A stretch of 64,000 bases of DNA from Rebecca billardiae RCC1528 (Eukaryota > Protista > Haptophyta): positions 434,001-498,000 of the forward strand of contig OZ251237.1 in assembly GCA_965240325.2 (NCBI GenBank), read 5' to 3'. This document shows, piece after piece, positions 4,880 through 56,069 of this stretch. Positions within the stretch are counted from its first letter, which is position 1; each line of letters begins with the position of its first letter. The position numbers and the translations under genes were made by a program. Under the pieces are notes generated by a model. That model ran no database searches. It was given only the letters and a program-made list of their open reading frames with translations, and was not told where the DNA came from.

Positions 4880-5705
4880 TCACCGGCGACACGATCGGAG
4901 GGGGTGGTGGTGCTTGGTCCCCTGCCGATGTTGCCGCTCACGCTGCTCGCGAATGACTCCTGGTCCTCCACCGCCGCGCACCTTCCCTGGCCCGCTCGCC
5001 ACTCCGCTGTGCACTCGCGGCCGAGCTCGCACGCCGCCGCCGCCGCCGCCGTCGCCGCCGACCTGCTCGTCACTGGCGACACGATGGGCCGCAGGGGGTG
5101 GGTGCTCGGTTCGCAGCCGATGTTGCCGCTCGCGCTGCTCCCAAACGACTCCTGGCCCTCCACCGCCGCGCACCTCCCCCCGCCCGCTCGCCACTCCGCT
5201 GCGCACGCGTTGCCGAGCGCGCACGCTGCCACCGCCGCCGCCGTCGCCGCCGCCCACACAGCCGCCGCTGCCGCCGCCGCCCTGACCTGCTCCTCACCGG
5301 CGACACAATGGGCAGGGGGGTGTTGCTCGGTCCCCAGCCGATGTCACCGCTCGCGCTGCTCGCAAGCGATTGCTCGCCATCCACCGCCACTCACCTCCCC
5401 CCGCCCGCTCGTCACTCCGCTGCGCACTCGCCGCCGAGCGCGCACGCCGCCGCGCCGCCGCCGTCACCCGTCCACACAGCCGCCGCCCGCCGCCGATCGG
5501 CGACACGATGGGCCGGGCGGGGGAGGGGGGGGGGGGGGGGTCGAGTACGCGGTCCTTAGCTGATGCTGCCGCGCACGCTGCTCGCAAACGACTCCTGGCC
5601 CTCCACCTCCGCGCACCTCCCCGCCTGCTCGCCACTCCGCTGCGTGCTGACTCGCCGCGCCGAGTAGCGCGCACGCGGCAACGCCGCCGCCGTCACAGCT
5701 GCCCA
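4880..5705. repeat. Degenerate tandem repeat, ~4 units of ~200 bp
   Basis: Recurring GGCGACACGAT...GCCGATGTTGCCGCTC...GACTCCTGGCCCTCCACC...CTCGCCACTCCGCTG blocks at about 4885, 5075, 5300 and 5500. Confidence 0.8.
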
Positions 5706-6783: not shown

Positions 6784-6799
6784 AATATAATATAATATA

Positions 6800-6866
<67 letters not shown>
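6784..6866. repeat. (AATAT)n/(TA)n microsatellite
   Basis: Direct reading. Confidence 0.95.
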
Positions 6867-6869
<3 letters not shown>

Positions 6870-30910: not shown

Positions 30911-31912
30911 TCACGACTCGATGTGGATGCGATCGCCCCACCTATTCTTGCGGCTGATCACGCGCGTGCTCCCCGCCTCGACTGAGCCGTCTTGCCCTGC
31001 GCGCGCGCCGCCGCGCCGCGTCGGGCCAGCACGAGAGAGCGCCGCGGACGCCGCCACAGCGGCGTCGTCGCCGCTCAGCATCCCCGCGCCGCCCGCCTCC
31101 TGCTGCGCGGCGCGCCGGCGCGCTCGGAGCTGGTCCCAGGTGCTCTCTCGGACGGGCGCCCCCGCTGCGGCCCGGCGCCCGGCTGTGGTGCTGGATGCAG
31201 CGCTCGCCACGCTCGCCGCCGCGGCAGCGGCGGAGCCGATCTGGCGCTCGCGCGGGGCATCCGGGTCGGCGCCACGCGCGGCGTCTGCAGAGAAGGCGCC
31301 GTCCGCGAGCACGCCGTCCGCGAGCACGCCGCCTGTGGTGCCGGATGCAGCGCTCGCCGCGCGCGCGCCGCTGACGGCGGCCTGCCGAGCACCGGCGGCG
31401 CCCTCAGATGCGCGCGCGGCGAATGGCGAGGCGTCCGTATCCACGCGCGCGTGCGCCAGGTCCGATGCGCCCCACGATTCGGAGGAGGGCGGCGGCGCCA
31501 CGCCGAGCGTCTCGCGCACGTGCTCCGCCAGCGCCGAGTCTGGCAGCGCGAGCAGGCTGCGCAGGCTCGCCTTGGTCGCCTGCATCTTGGCGGCGCCCGC
31601 GGCCATGTAGGCCGTGCCCGCGGCGACGACGAGGCGCGGGCCCATCGAGAAGCGCCGCGCGGGCGCGCCGAAGAGCGCTATCTTCTGGTGCGTCGCGAGG
31701 AGCACGGCGCCGAACGTGACGCCTCCGGCCATCGCCTGCGAACGCATCACAGACATGCCGCTGCGCATCAGCCATGTGCCTTCGTCGGGCGAGAAGCTGT
31801 AGTGGGTCTGGCGGACCCAGCGACCGAGCTCGGAGAAGGCGTGCGCCACCGCGCGGTCCGAGAGCGCGTCGGCGCCTGGCTGCGCGCGCTCCCGCTGCTC
31901 GCTGGCGGCCAT
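30911..31912 (-). CDS. OCIA-domain-like (OCIAD/Asrij-like) membrane protein
   Basis: Two hydrophobic segments (AGGVTFGAVLLAT; GPRLVVAAGTAYMAAG), then LALPDSALAEHVR, STWDQLRARR and terminal RKNRWGD, resembling the OCIAD layout. ATG 31912. Confidence 0.6.
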   Translation of the reverse strand: MAASEQRERAQPGADALSDRAVAHAFSELGRWVRQTHYSFSPDEGTWLMRSGMSVMRSQAMAGGVTFGAVLLATHQKIALFGAPARRFSMGPRLVVAAGTAYMAAGAAKMQATKASLRSLLALPDSALAEHVRETLGVAPPPSSESWGASDLAHARVDTDASPFAARASEGAAGARQAAVSGARAASAASGTTGGVLADGVLADGAFSADAARGADPDAPRERQIGSAAAAAASVASAASSTTAGRRAAAGAPVRESTWDQLRARRRAAQQEAGGAGMLSGDDAAVAASAALSRAGPTRRGGARAGQDGSVEAGSTRVISRKNRWGDRIHIES

Positions 31913-32174
31913 GGTCGCTGTCGCTCGCCTCGAGGCTTCGAGGAGCGGCAAACTCGCGGGCGTCGGAGCGCGGAAGCTGATGGATACTTCTCCGCAGTCC
32001 GCTCGATCTCCCGGACCGGTTTTGCCGCCGCATTCGCCCATCACTGTTTTCAAAGCTTCCGGTTGATGCTCCCGCAACATCAAGCTTGCTCATCCACTTC
32101 TCGGACCGGCTTGCCGGGGACCCTCCCCGAGGAACTCGGCGCGCTGACGTCGAGGCGTGGCGGAGTGCGGCGCG

Positions 32175-35100
32175 ATGAGCGGGTACGGTGAGGGCGGGGT
32201 GGCCTTCGCGCCCCGCCTCGGAGCGCCTCGTCGGCCGGGCGCGCAGCCGTCGGGCGCCGCTGCGCGCCTCTCGGCCGCGTCCACGCTGCGCTCGGCGGCG
32301 CGCACGCCGGTGCAGCGCGGCCAGCCGGTGCGGGCGTCCGCGCCCGGCCTGATCGCGCTCGAGCGCGTGATCGAGAACTTCACGAGCACGCTCATCCTGC
32401 AGAGCTTCCTCCGATGGAAGGTCGTCTACGCCATGGCCACCTTCTCCGCGCGCGACATCATGCACAACGCGATCGAGCAGCTCCGATTGGCGACGCTCGA
32501 CGGCACGCTCGAGCGCGCGCTGCGGCGGTGGCGGCGGCGCGCAGCGGAGCAGCGGCGGATGAAGCGGCTGACCCAGGCGATGCAGCAGCTCATGTTCGAG
32601 GCGCGCGTCGACACCTTCGCCTCGCTCGCGTGGACCGTGCCTGTGCTCGCCGCCTTCCGCGATTGGCACGGCGCGGCGCTCGCGCTCGCGCAGGCGAGCG
32701 AAGCGACGCAGCTGCTGGGCGCGCAGCTCGGGCTCACGCCGGAGGAGACGGCGCAGTACGAGCTGGCCTCGCTCACGGCCGCGCGGCGCGGCGAGGCGCG
32801 CCGCCCGTTCATCCACCGCCCTCCGCCCGAGCCGCCGACCGAGGCGGCGTCCACGGCCGGCAGCGACGGCGGCGGCGCCGCCGTTGCGGAGGGCGCGCAC
32901 CGCACGGCCGCGACGCTCGTCGTGACGGCCCTGCTCGCCGTGCACGCGCGGAGCGCCGAGGCGGCCTTCACGCGCTGGCGGCTGCACGCCCTCCAGCTCC
33001 ACGCGCACGGGCTGCTCTCGCATGTCGCCGAGGCGGAGGCCGCGCTGAGCGAGCTCGACCTGGTGGCGCGCGCCGCGGCCGAGGGCGGCGCGTCCGACCC
33101 GCTCGCGGCGCTGGCGCACCGCACGCAGTTCGAGCACGCGCGGCAGGAGCTCGGCGAGCGGCGCGAGTCGCCGCGCGGCGCCGACGCCGACGCCGCCCAC
33201 CTGCAGCAGCTCGAGGCGGCGCTGCGAAGCTTCCCCAAAGTTCTCGACTGGCTGTGGGTCGCGTCCGAGTCGTCGTTTGCGCGGCTGACGAGCGCGCGGC
33301 TGCGGCAGGCGCTCATGCAGTGGCAGGCCGCCGCCGCGGCCGTCGCCGCGAGCGACTTCGCCGCCGAGCGTGCCTGGCTGCTCGACCAGCTCACGCGCGC
33401 GCACGAGGCCACCGACGCCGCGCACGCGGCCACCACCGCCGCTCGGCTCGAGGCCGCCGCTCAGCTCGAGGCCGAGGTGGCCGCCGCGCGCGAGGCGGCG
33501 GCCGCCGCCGCGGCGGCCGCGCAGCCGCCCGCGGCTGCCGACGGAGCGGCCGAGGAGGATGCGGCGGCGGCGGGCCTGACGCTGCGCGTGGCCTCGACGT
33601 CGTCGAGCCGCCGCTCCAGCGGCGCCGGCAGCGCCTCCGACCGCGCCCGCCTCGCCCTCCCCAGCCCCGGCCGGCTACTGGCCGCGCACGGCGAGCGCCG
33701 GCTTGCGGCCGAGGAGCGCGAGCGAGACCTGCGCGCGCTCAAGGACGACATCACCGACTTTGTGGACGCGCTGGGCAGGCTCAAGCTGGCGCCGCTGACG
33801 GAGGAGGAGACGGCGGCGGGCAGGCTGCTCGAGCCCGTCGGCTCGTTCGTCGCGCCCATCGAGATCAAGACGGCGAAGGACATAGCCCTCTACTCGGCGC
33901 CCATGCCGCCCCCCGCGCAGCCCTCGGAGGCGCCGAAGCGCTCCGCCTCGCGCGGCGGCGCGGCCGACGCCGATGGCGACGCTGACACCGAGCGCGCGGC
34001 GCTCGGCGTGCCGTCAGCTGGTGCCGAAGCCGACGCCGATGCCGCCGCTGGCGCGCCAGCCGACGTGGCCGCCGCGTCGCGCAAGCCGCGCTCGCGCGCG
34101 CGCGAGGGCGCAGGCGAGGGCGAGGGCGGCGCCGCCCTCGACGAGCTCGACCCCTCGGAGGCGGCGCGAGCGGCGCGCGCGCGGCGGCACGGGGAGGGCG
34201 GCACCGAGGGCGAGGGCGGCACCGAGGCCGACGACGCCCCGACGGGCGCGGCGGGACGCACCGGGCGCGCCGCCGAGCGCCGCGCGCGCGCGCTCACCGC
34301 CGCGCCTGGCGCCGACTCTGCCAGCGGTGCGCCAAGCGCCGGCGGCACGCCCGCGCCGTCCACGCCGGCCGGCCGCTCCGCGGTGGGCTCGCCGCGCATC
34401 AGGCCCATCGACGACGACGCGGTCGGCGACCTTGAGCCGGCGCCGGGCGCGGCGGGCTCAGCAGCTGCCGGCGCGCACGGCGGTGCGGTCAGTGCGGCCG
34501 CCGACGCGCCGGCAGCCGCCGGCGCGGATGGCGCCGCCGACGGCGCAGCTGCGGCGGCGGGCGCTGCTGCGGCGCCGGCGGACGGCGCGGCGGATGGCGC
34601 TCTCACGCGCCGCGGCCGAGATCGTCGGCAGACGCCGGCTGGCGCCGAGGACGAGGAGGCGGACGCGGCTGCGCGCGAGGCGCGGCGGCGCGGCGCGCGC
34701 GCGGACGGGCGCGGCGATCGCGGCGGCGGTGCGGACGACGAGGGCGGCGCCGGCGAGAGCGGGGCGGCGGAGCTCGCCGCCGACGCCGCCGCCGCTGGCG
34801 CCGCCGCGGCCGACTCCGCCGAGGCCGCCGCCGACGACTCCGAGGGCGGCGTGCACACGGGCTCGTTCGTCGGCGGCGCGCTCTCCGCAGACGCGGTGCA
34901 GGCGGTGCGGATGTCGGCGCAGCGGCGCGCGTCACTGCTGCTGCTGCTGCGGCTGCACGCCATGCGCTGGATGGCGTCGTCGGCCGTCCGCGCCGCGTGG
35001 CTCGCGTGGGTGCGCTTCGCGTACGACGGCACGGGGCCCGACAGCGTGCCCGCGCTCGCCGACGCGACGGCGGCGAACCGGCAGCGCGCCGCAGCGGCGC

Positions 35101-38100
35101 GCGCGGGGCCGCAGCCGGACGAGTCGCGAGCGCTCTTCTCGCTCCGGCGCGCGCTGCGCCTTGCGATCAACGAGGAGATGGGCGCGCACGCGCGGCAGGG
35201 CAGCGGCGGCCCGCGCCGCGCCCCACTCGCGCCACCCTCCGCCGGCGAGCTCATCGGCGCCAACCGCTCGAGCATCGGCGGGCTCGCCAAGGAGCTCGAG
35301 GCGCAGGGCTTGCTCGAGGCGCTCACGGGCGGCGACGGCATGCGGCGCGGCGCGGGCTACGGCATGGTGTACCCGTACGGCCGATCGACGCTGCCGGGCG
35401 GCGCCGGGCCGTCGGGCGCGGGCGCAGGCGGCGCGGGCGGCGCGGACGCGGGCGGCGCGGGCGCGGGCGCGGCGGGCGCGGCGGGCGCGGCGGGCGCGGC
35501 GGGCGCCGCAGCGGTGGCAGCTGCAGGCGCGGCTGGCGCGGCTGGCGCGGGCGGCGCGGGCGCGGGCGGCGCGGGCGCGCGCGCGGGCACTGGTGCCGGT
35601 TTAGGCGTGGCTAGCTTGGCGGCAGAGGCCGCGGCGGCAGCAGCAGCACGCACCGCATCCGCCGGAGCGCCCGCCGACGGCGCCTCGGGTGATGCCGGCG
35701 CGGACGCGTCGGCGCCTGCGGGCGCAAGCGCGGCCGCGGCAGGCGCTGCGCCCGCCGCATCGCACGCCGACGGTTCCGCGGGTGATGATGCGGGCATGGC
35801 TGGCGCGGCGCCCGCGGGTGCCGCTGATGTGGCGGACGCAGCACACACAGCGGCTGTGGCGCTCATTGCGCCCACCACACACGCGCCCGCCGGCACCGAC
35901 GCGGCCGACGCGGCGCACACCGCAGCTGCCGCGCGCGCCGCTCCCGCCACCGACGCGGACGCGCCCGCAGGCGCCGACGCGGCGGCCATGGCGCTCGCAG
36001 CGGCTGCCGCGCTCGGCGCGCCGGCTGCCGACTCGCCGGCTGCGGCTGTCGCCCTCGCTGCTGGTGTCGAGGGCGCCGCGCTCACCCTCGGTGACGGCAC
36101 TGGCGGTGCGGACGCCGGCCGCGCGCGCTCCGAGGCCGAGCTACTGCGGCACATGCGCGTCGACCTCGAGCAGTTCGCCGCCGAGCTCCGGCTGCATGCA
36201 CGGCCGCCCGTGGCGGCTGAGAAGCCGACGGTCGAGAAGCTGAGCTCGGGGCCGCAGCTCGATGCGGATGCGTCCACGAATCTGTACTCGGCCGCGCCGG
36301 GGCAGACGCCTGCCCGGGCTGTGCGGAGTGTGCCTGACCCGGGCGCGTCCGGACCCAACGATCCGGCTTTTGGCGGCGGCTACGCTGGCTACGGCGGCTA
36401 CGGCGGCGGTGGGCAGGGCGGCGGAGGGAGCGGGTACGGAGGTGGCGGCTACGGCGGCGGCTACGGCGGTGGTGGTGGTGGCGCGGCCGCGGCGGCCGAA
36501 GCCGGGTTGGGAGGGCTCGGCGCGGCGGCTGGTGCGCTCGGGGATGGCGCCGGCGGGACCGGGGCCGGCGGCGCGGGTGCAGGGGGTGGGGCGGCTGGCG
36601 CCGCGGGCCTGGCTGCTGCCATCGCGGCCGCAGGTGGCACGGCGGCGACGGGTGCTGACGCGCTGGCAGCGGCGGCCACAGCAGGCGGCGCAGGGGGTGG
36701 GAAGGGCGGCGGTGCTGACCCCGGCAAAGCTGACGGCGGGAGCGTGGCCGCCGATGCTGCCGCAGACACTGATGACGCCGGCGGGTCGGCCGCCGCGGAC
36801 GCGGATGGCGCCGCCGACGGAGCAGCTGCGGCGGCGGGCGCTGCTGCGGCGCCGGCGGACGGCGCGGTGGACGGCGCTCTCACGCGCCGCGGCCGAGATC
36901 GTCGGCAGACGCCGGCTGGCGCCGAGGACGAGGAGGCGGACGCGGACACGGCTGCGCGTGAGGCGCGGCGCCGCGCCGCGCGCGCGGACGGGCGCGGCGA
37001 TCGCGGCGGCGGTGCGGACGACGAGGGCGGCGCCGGCGAGAGCGGGGCGGCGGAGGCCGGCAGTGGCGTCGGCAGCCGCATCGCGACCGGCGGCAGCGCA
37101 GGCGCCGCCGACGCGCCGGCCGGCAGTGGCGTCGGCAGCCGCATCGCGACTGGCGGCAGCGCAGGCGCCGCCGACGCGCCGGCCGGCAGCGGCGTCGGCA
37201 GCCGCATCGCGACAGGCGGCAACGCAGGCGCCGCCGACGCGCCGGCCGGCAACGGCGTCGGCAGCCGCATCGCGACAGGCGGCAGCGCAGGCGCCGCCGA
37301 CGCGCCGGCCGGCAGCGGTGTCGGCAGCCGCATCGCGACTGGCGGCAGCGCAGGCGCCGCCGACGCGCCGGCCGGCAGCGGCGTCGGCAGCCGCATCGCG
37401 ACTGGCGGCAACGCAGGCGCCGCCGACGCGCCGGCCGGCAGCGGCGTCGGCAGCCGCATCGCGACTGGCGGCAGCGCAGGCGCCGCCGACGCGCCGGCCG
37501 GCAGCGGTGTCGGCAGCCGCATCGCGACTGGCGGCAGCGCAGGCGCCGCCGACGCGCCGGCCGGCAGCGGCGTCGGCAGCCGCATCGCGACTGGCGGCAG
37601 CGCAGGCGCCGCCGACGCGCCGGCCGGCAGCGGCGTCGGCAGCCGCATCGCGACTGGCGGCAGCGCAGGCGCCGCCGACGCGCCGGCCGGCAGCGGCGTC
37701 GGCAGCCGCATCGCGACTGGTGGCAGCGGAGCCGGCGGCGGAGCGGACGGCGACGGCGGGAGCGATGCCGACGGCAGTGGCGTGAGCGCGGCTGGCATGG
37801 CGGATGACACCGGCTTCTACGGTGGCGCGGCAGGGTCGGCAGTGGGCGCCGCCGTCGCCGCCTCGGCTGTGGGCGGTGCGTACGGTGCGGGCGCGCCAGC
37901 TGGCGTCGGACCCGCCGGCCGCCGCAGCGCCGCAGCGCCCGCCACGTCTGCGCCGGGCGCGGCGGCGGCGGCCGGCGGCGCGTCCGGTCTTTCTGACGGC
38001 GGGGCCACGGCATATGGCGTGGATGTGGCCGCGTACGGGCTGGGTGCGGATGAAGACCGTGCGCCCGCCGCCGCCGCCGCCGCCGCCGATGCCGTGGGCG

Positions 38101-40164
38101 CCTATGCGGGCAGCGAGCGGAGCGGCTCGCGGCGCAGCTCGGGCGCACGCGCGGCGGAGGGCGGCAGCGATGCGCTCGACGAGGACGTGGGGTTTGGCGG
38201 CGTCTCGCGCGCGGCGCCAGGCGAGGCCGATGGCGGCGGCGGCGCGATGGGCCTCGGCGCGCTCGGCATCGGCGCGGGCGCGTACGCGGCAGGGGTGTAC
38301 GGCGGCGCTGGCGGCGGCGGCGCGGGCAGCGGGCTGGACGAGCGGTACGGCGCGGGCCTCGCCCCGGCGGCGGCGGCGCACTCGGCCGAGGCGCTGCTCG
38401 GCCTGCCGCCCGCCGCTGCGGATGAGAGCCCGCACGCGCGCGCGGCCAAGCTCGCCGCCTCTTCGCTCTACTCAGTCCGGATGGCTGCGATGGCGAGCGC
38501 GCTCCAGGCGTGGGCGATGGCGGCGGGCGTGGACGCGGTGACGGAAGGCTTTGAGGCGTGGCGGCTGCGCGCCGTGCACCTGCTCACCTACCTGATGCGC
38601 GCGCGCTCGCGCCGGATGCAGCTCGAGGTGCACGAGCGCGTGGAGAACCAGGTCTTCGCGCAGCGCTTTGCGCACCACCACATGCGCGCGAGCGCGCTCG
38701 CCGAGCTGATGTGGCGCATGCAGACGGACGTGCCGATGCGAGCGGCGTGGGGCTCGTGGCGCCGCGCCATCGTCCACGCCTACCGCGAGCACGTGCGCGC
38801 TGCGAGCCGCCGCGGCCGCCCCTGCCGAGCGAGGGCAGCGCGAGAAGGAGCAGCCCCGCGCGGCCTCGCGCGCGCACGCGCGCTCACACGCCACGGCGCG
38901 CCGCCCCCGCCGCCCCCGCCGCCCCCGTCCGCTCGCGCGCACACGCGCACGCACACAGGCGTTGCGCTGGGCGGAGGCGTCCGAGCACTGCAACGCGCAG
39001 CTCGTCAGCCTGCGCAAGGAGTACGCGCAGCTGAACGTGCACCTGAACGGCCGCGTGGTCGGGCAGCAGGTGGACGTGGCGGTGGCGCGGCAGCGCATGT
39101 GGATGCGCGCCAGGGCGGTGTACATGCACGCGCCCTCGAGCGAGCTGCTCAAGCGCATCATCTTCACGCACTGGCGCGCCGCATTTGGGCGCGGTTGGCG
39201 GCTGCGCAGCGCTCGAATGCCCGCGGCCGTGCGCGACGGCGACTCGCCGTACGCTGCCGTGCCGCCGCCGCCGCCGCCGTCGCACAGCGTGTGGGAGCCG
39301 GATGCGACGGGCGCGCGCGCGGCGCGCCGGACACCGCCGTCGCCGCCACCACCACCGCCGGCCGGGCAGAGCAGGCTGTATGTCGGGTGCGCGCGCTCGG
39401 CGCGCCGCGGTGCTGCTGCGCGCGCGCGTTCGCGCGCGCCGCGAGGGCCGGGCATGAATCAGCAGCCCTCGCTGAAGCCCCGCGTCCCCTCTTTCTGCCT
39501 GCGGCGGGCCGCGCGCTCCCTCCTCACCAGGCCTGGGATCGGCGCCGGGGGGCGGCAGAGCAGCGGCAGTGCCCAGTGGGGCGCCTACCCGAAGGGCTCG
39601 CCTGCGGGCGTGACGCGGGCGGGGCCGGCGCCGTCCGCAACGCCACCAAGCGTCTACTCGTCGCCCCCGCGCCGCAGCTCGCTCGACGATGTCGAGAGGG
39701 CGAACGCGCGCTACCAGCGGCAGCGGATCAGCACGCGCATGTGGGTCCTCAGCTCGTGCCGCAAGGTGCGCCGCCGCGCCGCGAGCGGTGCGCCCGCGCG
39801 TGGAAGGGCCGAGGCGCGCGGGCCGGGGCCTGCGCGGGGGCCCGCGCGCGGGCCGCGGCCTCGCGCGCGCGCGCGTGCAGCGGCGCCCTGAGACGCGCCG
39901 CTCGCTCACCATGCGGTCGCGCAGGTGGAGACTCGCAAGGCGTGGGATGCATGGCGCATCGCGCGGCTGATGCTGCAGAATGAGAGGCTGCAGGCGGCGG
40001 TGGCGCAGCGCGCCACGCCACCCGAGCCGCGCGAGCCTCAGGGCGCCACGGCGGCCCCGCCGCAGGCCAACCCGCCGCCCACGCCGCCGCCCACGCCGCC
40101 GCCAGCTGCCAAGCCGCCGGCCCGCGGCGGCCGCTTTGGCTTGAGCCTCCTGCAACGGCGTTGA
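32175..40164 (+). CDS. Giant Gly/Ala-rich protein with dispersed Sfi1-like (centrin-binding) W repeats; at least 3 exons
   Basis: Exon 1 is 32175-38792; introns 38793-38958 and 39766-39924; a further small intron near 39385-39445 is possible. About 11 [AS][FLW]xxW motifs (QSFLRWK, RALRRWR, AAFRDWH, AAFTRWR, QALMQWQ, AAWLAWV, EGFEAWR, AAWGSWR, IIFTHWR, KAWDAWR). Confidence 0.75.
34522..34772 (+). repeat. First copy of ~250-bp intragenic duplication (second copy ~36800-37055)
   Basis: Both encode [81 protein letters not shown]. Confidence 0.9.
37059..37730 (+). repeat. Coding minisatellite, 63-bp unit x ~10.7 (GSGVGSRIATGGSAGAADAPA)
   Basis: Unit starts at 37059, 37122 ... 37689; near-identical copies. 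Confidence 0.97.
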
Positions 40165-47701: not shown

Positions 47702-49267
47702 TGACCGCGTTCCGCGGTCCTTTTCTGCATAGAATCAACGCAGTTGGGGGCCCGCGGTGGCCGTGCAATCGCGGCTCTCCGCCGTAGTGGCAGTTCGCCA
47801 GTTGAAGTCGGTTCTGAGATGACTGAAGCTATATTAGTCCGACCGTCGCCCTGCCTGCGCGACCGCGAGACTCATTCACACTTCACACAATCACAGCAGC
47901 GGACCTGAGACCGCACCCGGCACCGGTCGTCAAATCGGACGTCCGCCTGACAACTAGCTGCCAAATGTCCAACTGGCTGATCAGCTCGGATCCGACCCGT
48001 CCGCGATCGTGCCATCGGCATCGGAATTACTACTAGTAGCTGCCAAACTGTGTCCAACTCTGGCTGATCAGCTCGGATCCGACCCGTCCGCGATCGTGCC
48101 GAGTGAGTCGTGCCGCGGAGCTCGGAGTACTGAAGGCCGAGTCGGGTGTGACAGCAGGGTGCTTTAGCGCTGCGGCCCGTGCCAGCCAACGACCAGACGT
48201 ACTCTGGCCACTTGACCCGTTGCACGGGTGAGTGACCGTACGCCCTGCCTAGTGCCTACCGCGCGCGCCGCGCGACCGGCGACTCGGGGTGATGGAGAGC
48301 GGATGGCGACAGCAGCAGCAGTCCTCATGAAGACGATGAAACTGGCGGCACGGGTGCACGAGGTGGCAGGCGAAAGCGCGCCGACGAGACCGCATTTGAC
48401 ACACCTGAGCCGCACGCGCGTGCCGTCGCCGAGCTGCGAGCGCTGCAAACGCGCAACCGTACCGCGCGCGCCACGACGGCGCGGCACTAGCTGATGCAGG
48501 CCGTACTGCCGGCACTGCTAGTCTGCGATCATGCGCCACGGTCGCAGCTGACTGCGTGAGCAGCAAGCGGGAGGCGGGTCCGGAGGCACGTGCAGGCGCC
48601 GTCCCGATGAAACTGGCGGCACGGGTGCACGAGGTGGCAGGCGAAAGCGCGCCGACGAGACCGCATTTGACACACCTGAGCCGCACGCGCGTGCCGTCGC
48701 CGTCAGAGCGGCGAGCGCTGCAAACAAACGCGCAACCGTACCGCGCGCGCCACGACGGCGCGGCACTAGCTGATGCAGGCCGTACTGCCGGCACTGCTTC
48801 TGCGATCATGCGCCACGGTCGCAGCTGACTGCGTGAGCAGCAAGCGGGAGGCGGGTCCGGAGGCACGTGCAGGCGCCGTCCCGCATATCCGCCATCGCCC
48901 ATCGTGCCGGGGCACGTCACCTCCGACGATCCGGATGTGGCCCAGTCCGGACGTCACGCGATCCGGGAAGACGAGTACGATTCGCTCGTAACGAACCGTT
49001 ACACTAATGTCACGTCCAGCTGACGTCCAGATCGCACTTTACTTATAAGGGAATCAGCTGGGCGCGGTTTTTTTTGGCCTGATAGACCTCTCAATGCGAT
49101 CTCAAAAACTCGAAACTCGGTCTCCGCCAGCCCTAAAAATCGCCCCCCGTCCCTTTTTTTCCGCCGCCCCCCGTCCCTTTTTTCTTGATCAAAGATCTTT
49201 TTGAAACGTGGTTCGGGCCCGCTGGTGCGGGCTCCACGCTGCGCGCTCCGCCCTGCACCGCGGGCCA
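47702..49267. mobile_element. LTR-like unit, copy 1 (has an extra ~280-bp internal duplication at ~48520-48800)
   Basis: Begins TGACCGCG; near-identical to 49268-50556; lacks the last 5 nt (TAACA) at the junction. Confidence 0.65.
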
Positions 49268-50982: not shown

Positions 50983-53426
50983 CTAGCGCGCAGGTCGCGG
51001 GCGCGCACTGTTCTGGTCCACCACGACGAGCTCGTCCTCGGAGTCGGAGTGCACGACGTTCTCGAAGCGGTGGCGCTGCCTGAGGCCCTCTCGGCGAGGC
51101 TGGCGCGGGGGCGAGTTGACGTGCACGCGGTTGAGCGCGGCGGTGCCCGCGGTCGGCTGGCCGTTTCTGTCGCACTCGGTCACCTCGACCTTGTACCCGT
51201 GCTTCTCGAAGGTGCCCTTCCACTTGTAGCCCACGAGCTTGATGCCGACGAGCCGCCTGCCACTCATCGCGCCATCGTTGATGCGCACTCGGCAGATCTT
51301 GATCGGCTTCTGCGCTCCGCGCCGCGCGTCGTCGAGCGCAGAGTTGAGCATGCTCCACAACGGCATGATGCAGCCGCCGAGGAAGGGCTGCAGGTAGATT
51401 CGGTTCTGGATGTTGCAGTTGCCGTTGTTGTGGGTGCAGCCAGGTCCGTGGTAGCACGCCGTGAGCGCGTGCTCGAAGAAGCCCCGCCACAGCGGCTCAG
51501 CCTCGCTCTCCGTCAGCCGCACGAGCTTCTCGGGAATGTCCCGCTCCGTGTAGAGAGTCTTGCTCAGCCCGCTGCGCGACGCGCGCGCGCGGGTCACGGC
51601 CGTCAGCGCGCGGCTCAGGGGCGCGCACGCACGCCCGGCTCTCACGCGCGCACCAGTGCGGCATGTAGTCGCGATACGTCGGGATCCACACGTGCTCCGG
51701 AATCAGCTGCGGCCGCGGGATGCGCGCGAAGAGGTGCGGTCGGTGGTTGCGCGTGTGCGGGATGGTGTTCCTCGTGCGCCACCAGCCCGTGAGCCCGCCC
51801 GCGTCCACCGTCTTGCGGTACTCGAGCTCGCGCCTGGCCGCGTCCCAGGACATGCCCTTGTCCAGCTCGAGCTCGTAGTACTTGGCGGGCGCCTTGGACA
51901 CCTCCTCGTGCGCCACCTCCTGCGGCGTGCCGCGCACGCGGATCAGCCGCGCGGTGATGTCGACGACGCCGTCGTCGTACTGCCCCGCCTCCTTGGCGCG
52001 CTTGATCCGCTCCTGCGTCTCCATCGAGAAGTGCGCGAACGCCTGCCGCTGCAGCGCGATCGGCAGCCCGAGCAGCCGGTTGAGGAAGGTGCGCACCTGC
52101 ACCTTCTCGATCTTCTTCTCGTCGTTCACGTCGAGGCCGGTGGCGGCGAGGCCGTCCTCCAGCTCCTCGAGGTACGTCTGGAACTCGGCGGCACGCTCCT
52201 CCTCATCGCCCCCGTCCTCTGCGCCGTCGGGCGGCGGCACGGTGCCATCGTCGCCGCTGCCGCCGGCGCCGCCGCCACCGCCGCCGCCGCCCGCGCTGCC
52301 GCCCGCGCCCGCGCTGCCGCCGGCGCCGCCCGCGCCGGCGCTGCCGCCCGCGCCGCCCGCGCTGCCGCCCGCGCCCGCGCTGCCGCCCGCGCCCGCGCTG
52401 CCGCCCGCGCCTGCGCTGCCGCCCGCGCCGCCCGCGCCGGCGCTGCCGCCCGCGCCGCCCGCGCTGCCGGCGCCCGCGCCGCCCGTGCTCGCGCGCCGCC
52501 CGCCGGCGTTCGCGGGCGGCTTGCGCGCGTGCAGCACCGCGTCGAACACCTGGTTGCTCGGCGGGCTCGAGTGGGGCGAGCGCACGAGCGACAGGATCTC
52601 GTCCACCGCCTGCCGGCCGTACTTGTGCTCGTAGTTGAACGCCTGCGCCGCGAGCGCGCGCGGCGAGCGCGCGCGGCGTGCGCGCGGGTGCAGGGGCGCG
52701 CGAGCACGCGTGATGGGCGAGCCGCGGGCGCGACGAGCGCGCGCGCCGCGGGCGCGTGCCTCGGCCCCGCGCAGCCCCCGCCCCCGCCCGCCCCCGGACG
52801 CGCGCGCGGGCCCTCGCGCGCGTCCGCCCGCCGGCGCACACCTCGAGGTTGGCCGCGTCGTTGGCGCGCCGGTCGCCCTTGGTGAGCGCGCCGAGCGCCT
52901 GCAGCCGCTTCGCCACGGAGGAGGCGAAGCGGCGCTCGCCGCCGACGTTGGTCATGAGCAGCAGGTACTCGGGCGCGACGATCTGGTTGGAGCGGTGCGT
53001 GCGGCCGAACTGCTGGATCGCCTCGTCCGCCGACCACGGCAGCTCGATCGTGATGTGCAGCCGGCGGCGCGCGTTCCGGAAGCGGCGGTCGGCGTGCAGC
53101 GAGATACCGGACGACGCGGCCTCGCTGATGATGGCGACGCGCTTGCGGTCGCTGATGAACTCGTCCTTCTCGCGCAGGTTCACCTTCGCCATCGCCACCA
53201 GCTTGTTGTTCTCCTTCAGGTCGCGGTTGCGCGGCCGCACCTCCATCCGGCCGTTCTCCCACACGCGGCGCGCCTTGCGCCCCGTGAGCTCTGCCACTTT
53301 GTGGATGCCGCCGAGGTCGTGCACCAGCTGGTCGAGCGGGTTCTCGGGCAGGTCGAGGTCGGCCAGCTTCGAGAGCATCTGCTCCTTCAGCTGGCTGAGC
53401 CGCCTCCACAGCGACTTGGGCACGTA

Positions 53427-53478
<52 letters not shown>

Positions 53479-53930
53479 GGCTTGCTCCCGCCCGCGCCGG
53501 CGCCGCCGCCCGTCTTTGCGCGCTTGGTCGGCGGCGCCGCGGCCGCGGACTGGCTGCCCGCCGCCGCGCCGAGCCGCTTGCGCCACAGCAGCTCCACCTG
53601 CGCGCGCCTCGTCTTGGGCAGCTTGGCGCGGCTTACCTCCAGCGCGACCAGCCGCTGCTGCAGCTCGGAGCGCGCGAGCTTCCACAGCTTCTCGAACTCC
53701 GCCATCAGCGCGTCGACGAGCGCGGGCGTGCCCGAGGGCGCGCGCTTGGGCACGCCGGTCGGGCCGGTGCACATCACGGAGAACATCTGCGCGAGGTCGG
53801 CCCCGCCGGCGAGCTCGAGCGTGCGCCGCTGCACGCGCTTCGACACCACCTCGTCCTGCGTGAGCTGCAGCAGGTCCTCCTCCTCCTCCGAGTCCTCGTC
53901 CAGGTTGATCGGGCTCGAGCCGCCACCAAA

Positions 53931-53967
<37 letters not shown>

Positions 53968-56069
53968 TCGTCGGCGCCGCCGCCGCCGGAGGGCGCGCCG
54001 CGCAGGTCGTTCGCCGCGCGCGTCCACGCCGGCAGGCTCACCGGCGGCAGCGCCTTCTTCTGCTTCTTCTTCTTGCCCGCCGCGCCGCTCGACGCCGCGC
54101 CCGCCGCCGGGTCCTCCTCCTCGGCCTCTGGTCCCTCGTCGTCGTCCTCCTCCTCGTCCTCGCGCACGACGAGGCTCTCCTTGCACGGGAAGCGCTCGAG
54201 CAGGTGCTCGAGCAGCGCGCGCGTGCCTCGGAACTCCTCAAGCTCCTCCTCCGTCTGCGCCTGCTTGACCGCGTCCGCGAGCCGCGCCTCGCCCGTCGAC
54301 TGCAGCCCGATCACCACCGCGCGGCCGTCGGCAAGCGCCGCGTTCGCGTGCCGCACGACGCTCGGCACCTTGATCGACATGCACAGCTGCTTGAAGAAGC
54401 GCTGGTGCGTGCCCCACAGCACCGCGAGCGGGTTGTACCGCGGCTTGAGGCCGAGCGCGCGCAGCTCGATGTACGCGTGCGCGAACACCTCGTACAGCGA
54501 GTGCCAGAAGCTCACCGCGTCGTCGTACATGCGCGTCTGCGCGCGCGTCGGCTCGATCTCAACCGTCTCAAAGTCGCAGTCCTGGTACGAGAGCATGCGC
54601 GAGACGTACGCGCCGCGCTGCTTGAGGTCGAGCGCGACCAGCTCCATCGCGCCCTCGCCGCCGTTCGAGATGGCCTTCTCGAACGCGGAGAACTGCGGGA
54701 ACGGCGTCGTCGGGCCCCACAGCCCGAGCCGCACCATGTACGCCATCCCCTTGACCGACGAGCAGCCGGTCGCGGAGCAGTACACGATCTTGGCCTTGGG
54801 CAGCGCGAGCTGGAGCTCGCGCACCGCCGCGCCCGTCTTCGTCGCCTTCGCCCCGCCCTCGGGCACCAGGTTCTTCGCGCGGTGGCACTCGTCGAAGATG
54901 ATCACGCCGCCGCCGTCCGTGCCGCCGCCCTTGAGCCACTCGACCAGCTGGGTGAGGCGGCGCGCCGGGTCGAGGTTGACCTGCGGCTCCTCCTCGTCCG
55001 CGTCGTCGTCCTCCTCCTCGTCCTCCTCGTCCTCGTCGTCGTCCGCACCGCCGGCGGGCGCGTCCTCCTCCTCGCCCGCGCCCTGCGCGCGCTTGCGCCT
55101 CGAGCCGCCGCCGCCGCCGCCGCCGCCCGCCGCCTTGCCGCCCGCCTGCCGCTCCGAGCTGATGAGCGTCGCGTACGTGCAGAAGACGATGCCTTCGGGC
55201 TGCGCGCGCAGCTTGGCGCGGTCGAGGTCGTTGAGGCGCAGCACGCGGAGCGGGCAGCCGATCTCGCTCACGTCGCGCCGCGCGTCCTCGACCAGGTCGT
55301 TCGAGACGGAGATCCACACGTGGTGCTTGAGCCCTCGCAGGTACTGCTCGTAGATGATGCCCGCCTCCTGCCTGCCCTTGCCCACGCCCGGCCCGTCGCC
55401 GAGGAAGAAGCCGCACGTCGTGTCCGACTGCGGGAAGGTGCGGGCGTGCCGGTCGGCCGCGAGGGCGACGGTCTCGAGCTGCAGCGCCGACAGCCGCCCC
55501 GCCGACTTGCCGCTCGCCGACGAGGCGACGAGCGCTGCGAGCTTGAGGCCCGAGGTGTCGATCGTCGGCAGCTCGACAAACGAGAGCGACGTGGTCTCGA
55601 AGACGGCGCTGGGGTGCGAGGGCACGTCGTCGAAGCGCACCTGCGGCTCGTACTCCTGGAACAGCGCCTCGACCTCTTCGTCCATGTCGAAGCGCTCCTC
55701 CTGCTCGCCTGCGGCGGCCCTCGCCTGCGCGGCCGCCGCGGCCGCCTCCTCCTGCTCGCGCACGCGCTGGCGCGCCGCATCCTCCGAGGCGTCCGCTTGG
55801 TGCCGCGCGGTGCGCTCGCGGCTCTGCTTCGCCCGATTCCGCGCGCTGATCCAGCTCGGGTCCTCATCCGTGGCGTCGCAGTGGGTGGACCATTGTTTGC
55901 ACGCCGAGGCGACGTCGTCGCAGACAAAGCAGTAGCAGTTCTCGCAGCAGCTCGAGTTCTGGCCCTCGCCGAAGCGGTGCACGACGCACTTGTCGCGCGG
56001 GTGGGGAAAGTCCTTGAGCGCGACCGCGCCGCGCGTCTCGAGAATCTCGATATCGTCGTCGTCCTCCAT
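50983..56069 (-). CDS. SBNO1: Strawberry notch homologue (SBNO/FORGETTER-like helicase-related protein) with N-terminal RIN13-like Cys/His domain; 3 exons
   Basis: [108 protein letters not shown]. Introns 52841-52643 and 51653-51572. Confidence 0.93.

Follow-up and report, generated by a model that had tools for sequence, protein, structure and literature searches.

A predicted 2,506-residue haptophyte protein with scattered Trp motifs of centrin-binding type and long Ala/Gly-rich tracts: a candidate flexible tether

Much is known of centrin fibres and their Sfi1-type scaffolds from work on yeast, animals, apicomplexans and ciliates; a literature search found no study of Sfi1 in haptophytes. 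Sfi1 is built of 17-23 contiguous repeats that lie 23-37 amino acids apart and form one long centrin-coated helix (PMC2173958, PMC2063913); the human protein has 23 repeats in 1,242 amino acids (PMC2173958), and contiguous repeats are needed for a centrin filament (PMC2063913). The repeat consensus is AX7LLX3[F/L]X2W[K/R] (PMC2173958), and its hydrophobic triad has been written as L8xxxL4xxW1 (PMC3871271). The minimal centrin-binding motif in use in the field is shorter, [FLW]xxW[KR]; it singled out PfSlp of the Plasmodium falciparum centriolar plaque, a very large protein without Sfi1 sequence homology that is "Sfi1-like" solely through its accumulation of this motif, and that co-purified with centrin (PMC10180636). 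Giant Sfi1-family proteins in the myonemes of the ciliates Spirostomum and Stentor are scaffolds that form centrin networks (bioRxiv 10.1101/2024.11.07.622534, 10.1101/2025.08.11.669701). The locus described here lies at positions 32175-40164 (+) of a 64,000-nucleotide stretch of the haptophyte Rebecca billardiae RCC1528 (GCA_965240325.2, contig OZ251237.1, positions 434,001 to 498,000; the window), and is predicted to encode a protein in which clusters of such Trp motifs alternate with long low-complexity tracts. An earlier description from the letters of the DNA (the sequence-only reading) had seen in it a giant Sfi1-like protein with elastomer-like spacers, and hence a candidate contractile or elastic fibre scaffold; its observations were confirmed and its interpretation is partly supported, and the label of a giant Sfi1-like contractile or elastic fibre exceeds the evidence.

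The predicted product (2,506 amino acids, 241 kDa, isoelectric point 6.0, Ala plus Gly 43%) is tentatively read here as a flexible tether, and not as a contractile rod; a small number of its helices would serve as docking sites for centrin or calmodulin-like EF-hand proteins. Three alpha-helical modules, N-terminal, central and C-terminal, appear to carry the motif pattern by which Sfi1-type proteins dock centrin; each module would dock one to three EF-hand proteins of either type, and long, flexible, mildly acidic spacers would keep the docking modules apart. The protein would act as a tether or linker between centrin-containing structures and, unlike Sfi1 or the ciliate giants, would form no continuous centrin-coated contractile rod. 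Binding of EF-hand proteins is something that we infer, as are the tether role and any cellular location. A fuller proposal makes the protein a centrin-system component of a new kind: long, flexible Ala/Gly-rich spacers would join small groups of centrin-docking helices of Sfi1 type into a modular tether, which would serve within an unusually elaborate Ca2+-responsive centrin cytoskeleton of a haptophyte-type alga; it is improbable in all its parts together.

All 26 Trp residues of the protein fall within three helical regions, 17 of them in exon 1 (amino acids 81-401, 932-945 and 2113-2195) and nine in the 3' exons. The N-terminal Trp-helix cluster (32349-33404, +; amino acids 59-410) contains FLRWK (32406-32420), LRRWR (32520-32534), FRDWH (32655-32669) and FTRWR (32967-32981); the central cluster (34932-35024, +) holds W932, W942 and W945, with a GC content at third codon positions (GC3) of 0.96; and the C-terminal cluster within exon 1 (38472-38792, +) contains FEAWR (38550-38564) and WGSWR (38748-38762). 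The motif [AS][FLW]xxW, for which the sequence-only reading had correctly reported N-terminal, central and C-terminal clusters, occurs nine times against 1.05 expected, a count reached in 0 of 20,000 shuffles; [FLW]xxW[KRH] occurs six times against 0.40 expected after shuffling of the ordered parts of exon 1, and again no shuffle out of 20,000 reached six. The minimal motif [FLW]xxW[KR] falls on 7 of the 26 Trp residues, as opposed to 1 of 57 in ten other open reading frames (ORFs) of the window (binomial P 2.5e-7), and accumulates above both of these backgrounds, the other ORFs and the shuffles. As read from the printed sequence, five to six motifs have hydrophobic residues at positions -7 and -3, and motif 1 (V-x7-LI-x3-F-x2-W-K) fits the Sfi1 consensus almost completely. 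Given the excess of Trp motifs, these hydrophobic positions and the fit of motif 1, the Trp motif is, as far as sequence can tell, real and of the centrin-binding type; seven to eight scattered copies of the pattern hydrophobic-x3-[FLW]-x2-W-[KR/H] are found across the 2,506 amino acids, in the three modules. The criterion by which PfSlp was called Sfi1-like thus also describes the haptophyte protein; yet PfSlp first came to light in co-immunoprecipitates of centrin, with which it also co-localises (PMC10180636), whereas the present protein, unrelated to it in sequence and lineage, is known from its gene sequence alone.

Conservation of these motifs could be followed in a single relative, P0001 (E value 3e-12), which was the only one recovered in an exhaustive phmmer search with amino acids 55-600 against 1.84 billion representative proteins; the gene behind it was mis-called and is found on two ENA metagenome contigs (L001 and L002), 2.4 kb long and with 71-72% GC. 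Its three exons match amino acids 23-82, 83-145 and 145-231 at 49-64% identity (tblastn), and the comparison covers this N-terminal part, amino acids 23-231, where the contigs of the relative end. Within it, W81, W119, W153 and W164 are all retained and RALRRWRRRAA is identical in both proteins, and the relative has its start Met about as far upstream of motif 1 as the present protein; the best conserved motif copy is located in a strongly basic amphipathic helix. The sequence-only reading had named loss of the W motifs in orthologues as grounds for abandoning it, and the four N-terminal Trp residues of the only relative found speak for retention instead. The two introns of the relative (139 and 157 nucleotides, GTGCGC...GCAG; L002:1528-1666 and L002:1865-2021) correspond to continuous sequence at window positions 32420/32421 and 32606/32607, so that, on the predicted gene structures, introns have been gained or lost between these close relatives. 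JGI metagenome contigs, scanned once with an exon-2 alignment and once with the C-terminal domain, gave no further relative, and three word-index protein searches (N-terminal region in its whole-length context, isolated N-terminal domain, C-terminal domain) were blank; the first two of these blanks carry little weight because the searches were saturated by low-complexity words and missed P0001. Synteny of the upstream neighbour with the contig of the relative was not detectable. The protein family looks confined to a narrow lineage. A reading of the N-terminal "VAFAP" as a plastid-targeting motif was rejected, since no signal peptide precedes it and the motif is absent from the relative.

The Trp regions are predicted to be helical. 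In single-sequence AlphaFold2 models the N-terminal region is all helix, and about 120 residues of the C-terminal module form a nearly continuous helix, arranged as three long helices without compact packing (predicted local distance difference test score, pLDDT, 75; predicted template modelling score, pTM, 0.36). The near-continuous helix together with the low pTM suggests that the C-terminal module is extended; an extended rod would agree with this model, as would other explanations. The sequence-only reading had taken the Trp clusters for the only ordered-looking parts of the protein; the helical nature of the Trp regions holds, and their exclusiveness does not, as some segments without Trp (for example amino acids 500-590) likewise look ordered and coding-like. 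An internal similarity between amino acids 505-600 and 1326-1400 (a helix and an LYSA motif) was dropped since it was not significant by BLASTP.

Several results weigh against EF-hand docking. Pfam returned no family at E<=1 for the whole ORF, and no Sfi1 match at E<=10 for six segments. A 30-column profile of eight Trp motifs retrieved nothing from the PDB at E<=10, Sfi1 chains included; the N-terminal region, compared with PDB sequences, matched nothing above noise (E values of at least 0.68), a Foldseek search with the C-terminal model gave no match, and two Atlas look-ups returned only scores below 0.9 and no Sfi1. Few residues define the motif, and any amphipathic helix will have hydrophobic positions at -3/-4 and -7. 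Conservation can be checked for the N-terminal motifs only, evolutionary depth is small because a single relative was found among all representatives searched, and confidence in the model of the N-terminal fold is low (pLDDT 48). Nearly as likely as the tether is an alternative in which the gene is real but its Trp helices are unconnected with centrin: they would be hydrophobic seams in coiled coils or helix bundles of the protein itself, for self-association or for another partner, and the protein would be a scaffold or matrix component, disordered for the most part and specific to its lineage. Such an explanation would account for the failure to find any family, structure or profile link to Sfi1, for the irregular spacing of the motifs (38, 45, 104 and more residues), for the long amphipathic helices predicted, and for the clustering of Trp residues outside the motif as well (for example W153, W359/361, W401 and W932-945). 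A purely structural core leaves unexplained, however, why a basic residue follows the motif Trp so much more often here than in the neighbouring ORFs, and conservation is highest in an amphipathic helix that is anchored by Trp, very basic and of the kind typical of EF-hand targets.

By every formal test applied to its predicted sequence, the protein is not a true Sfi1 repeat protein. The Kilmartin rule A-x12-[FL]-x2-W-[KRH] (PMC2173958) has one match, at amino acids 252-269, where at least three are required, and the rule [FWL]x2W[KRH]-x21-34-[FWL]x2W[KRH] (PMC2173958) also has one, from W81 to W119, where at least two are required; W81 and W119 are the sole pair at Sfi1-like spacing, and other distances from motif to motif range from 45 to more than 1,800 amino acids. 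Likeness to Sfi1 (S. cerevisiae Sfi1p, S. pombe Sfi1, human SFI1) consists of helical, Trp-ended [FL]xxW[KR] motifs and of few prolines in the Trp-helix regions; in contrast to the contiguous Sfi1 repeats, the motifs of the haptophyte protein are dispersed over three distant modules, and half of the chain is Ala/Gly-rich low complexity. The ciliate giants share with it the large size and centrin-binding motifs of the Trp type; they are scaffolds of centrin networks, whereas here the motifs are sparse, with hundreds of low-complexity residues between them. It is therefore very unlikely that the protein belongs to the Sfi1 family proper and forms the backbone of a centrin fibre, Ca2+-contractile or elastic, with Gly/Ala tracts as entropic springs, even though the enrichment of Trp motifs and the nearly full match of motif 1 to the Sfi1 consensus (PMC2173958) would be expected of one. 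Besides the two rules and the blank Pfam search, the density of about three motifs per 1,000 amino acids is far from that of human Sfi1 (PMC2173958), and the repeats are not contiguous, as a centrin filament would require (PMC2063913). The epithet "giant Sfi1-like" given by the sequence-only reading was not upheld.

The composition of the tracts argues against springs as well. Low complexity makes up about 1,236 residues (49% of the protein), with 34.5% Ala, 24.9% Gly, 7.7% Asp and 4.0% Pro and a net acidic charge. Tract 1 (33975-34874, +) consists of Ala, Gly, Asp and Arg; tract 2 (35397-36164, +; Ala 46%, Gly 20%) has a GAAGAA run from 35466; tract 3 (36372-37054, +; Gly 34%, Ala 33%) begins with a GGY run from 36372; and tract 4 (37731-38414, +) has 31% Ala, 27% Gly and some Tyr. 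Between tracts 3 and 4 lies a tandem repeat (37055-37728, +) with 10.7 copies of a 63-nucleotide (21-amino-acid) unit (Tandem Repeats Finder score 1271, 97% matches, no indels), the copies of which are 95-97% identical to each other. An acidic/Arg block is duplicated in frame, with copy 1 in tract 1 (34527-34772) and copy 2 in tract 3 (36804-37055), the latter sharing one base with the start of the 63-nucleotide array at 37055; the copies are 97.6% identical, with six differences in 246 nucleotides, and their offsets, 2277 and 2283 nucleotides, are both multiples of 3. The GAAGAA and GGY tracts, the 21-residue repeat and the duplicated block had all been described beforehand, and all were located. 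Further short arrays in the tracts have units of 9, 15 and 42 nucleotides. No 60-residue stretch with at least 60% Ala plus Gly was found in any other long ORF of the window, which suggests that the tracts are specific to this gene and not a general local property; most likely they grow by in-frame slippage and duplication.

Silk likewise has Ala/Gly blocks, and in composition the tracts resemble them. Elastomeric and silk-like proteins (elastin, abductin/resilin-like Gly-rich repeats, spider silk) share with the haptophyte protein long tracts of short repeats, here GAA, GGY and the 21-residue unit. The common feature of self-assembling elastomers is a high combined content of Pro and Gly (PMC5703643, citing Rauscher 2006); the tracts do have tandem short repeat units in the 63-nucleotide array, the 9-, 15- and 42-nucleotide arrays and the GGY run, but, being dominated by Ala, poor in Pro and net acidic, they do not have the composition that "elastomer-like" implies (PMC5703643), and "flexible low-complexity spacer" is the safer description.

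The gene model most likely represents one real four-exon nuclear gene, as predicted from sequence. An ORF at 32157-39983 (+) is open over 2,608 codons, with an ATG at 32175; introns were read from the DNA and their phases checked by script. Exon 1 (32175-38792, +; 2,206 codons) holds the N-terminal, central and first C-terminal Trp-helix modules and all low-complexity tracts in a stop-free frame, with a GC3 of 0.93-0.96 in the ordered parts; among its 2,206 residues there is no Cys, and Lys (0.7%) is much rarer than Arg (7.9%). At predicted intron 1 (38793-38958, +; 166 nucleotides, phase 0) the coding frame is lost, and it is regained in exon 2 (38959-39386, +), which is helical, contains FTHWR (39163-39177) and ends in a Pro-rich tail, with a GC content of 0.73/0.59/0.92 at the three codon positions in phase. 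After predicted intron 2 (39387-39530, +; 144 nucleotides), exon 3 (39531-39765, +; GC3 0.91 in phase) joins without a stop, and after predicted intron 3 (39766-39924, +; 159 nucleotides), exon 4 (39925-40164, +) carries WDAWR (39943-39957), a Pro/Thr-rich tail and the stop codon TGA (40162-40164). All three introns have the splice signals GTGCGC...CAG, matching those of the two introns in the relative. The sequence-only reading had placed the end of a protein of about 2,500 amino acids at the same coordinate.

Could the long frame be a product of base composition? In this explanation the tracts, at 80% GC, would be open by composition and partly intron or intergenic DNA, and the locus would encode two to three separate proteins or a single, much shorter one. 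Other frames too stay open for 500-760 codons within the tracts, GC3 is reduced there to 0.76-0.89, and the databases searched yielded no annotated protein for this gene; in addition, three donor-like GTGCGC sites (34327, 36532 and 38059) are each followed in frame by a CAG acceptor 135-234 nucleotides downstream, so that small in-frame introns inside the tracts are possible. Yet the strong in-frame coding signals at 32200-34000, 34900-35500 and 38200-38800 (GC3 0.94-0.97, GC at second codon positions 0.48-0.61) lie in one frame, which would have a 1-in-9 chance if they were independent, with no intervening stop. Other frames have stops in most sub-regions, and the frame of exon 1 alone is stop-free across 6.6 kb. 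Its coding signal disappears beyond about 38800, and exons 2-4 regain a coding-like GC3 of 0.85-0.92; GC declines to a non-coding level immediately upstream of 32175 and downstream of 40164 (0.46-0.6 downstream, intergenic-like). Gly codons within the tracts are mainly GGC, as in the ordered parts; this preference would not be expected from composition alone, and supports coding tracts. Repeat periods, like the offsets of the duplicated block, are multiples of 3 (29 of 32 tandem-repeat periods), and four of the six changed codons of that block are synonymous. Candidate introns of about 150 nucleotides would remove only a small share of 3.7 kb of tracts. An artefact of this kind is thus unlikely; codon usage, in-frame repeats and the metagenome relative support a real gene, and the shared stop-free frame and in-phase exons favour the single gene of the sequence-only reading over several separate ones.

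If the helices of the proposed flexible tether do dock centrin, the short Trp motif would be usable beyond the continuous rod, as sparse anchors on a flexible, mostly disordered chain, and these algae would have in the protein a concrete candidate for a link between centrin structures. If they do not, the locus would be a good example of in-frame slippage, in an 80% GC genome, inflating a lineage-specific gene to 7.5 kb, and a caution against labelling proteins Sfi1-like on a five-residue motif.

The surrounding DNA has the character of nuclear DNA from a very GC-rich eukaryote (64-83% GC per 2 kb), and neighbouring genes of the window are of ordinary eukaryotic kinds and encode MMS19, a Strawberry-notch helicase, ArgJ, a 5'-nucleotidase and an ARM-repeat protein. 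A divergent ORF immediately upstream (30911-32083, -; 390 amino acids, coding-like GC, no Pfam family) is separated from the ATG at 32175 by only about 90 nucleotides; with so short a gap, the two may share a very short bidirectional promoter region. In-frame expansion on a much smaller scale is seen in the Strawberry-notch-like helicase ORF (52203-56069, -), which contains a GC-rich tandem array of 18-, 27- and 45-nucleotide units at 52252-52505. Tandem duplications occur at 48348-48883 (a 277-nucleotide unit, 2.0 copies, 95% matches) and at 4899-5252 (a 192-nucleotide unit, 1.8 copies, 87% matches), and an (AT)43 microsatellite at 6785-6867 lies within a stretch of 58-66% GC.

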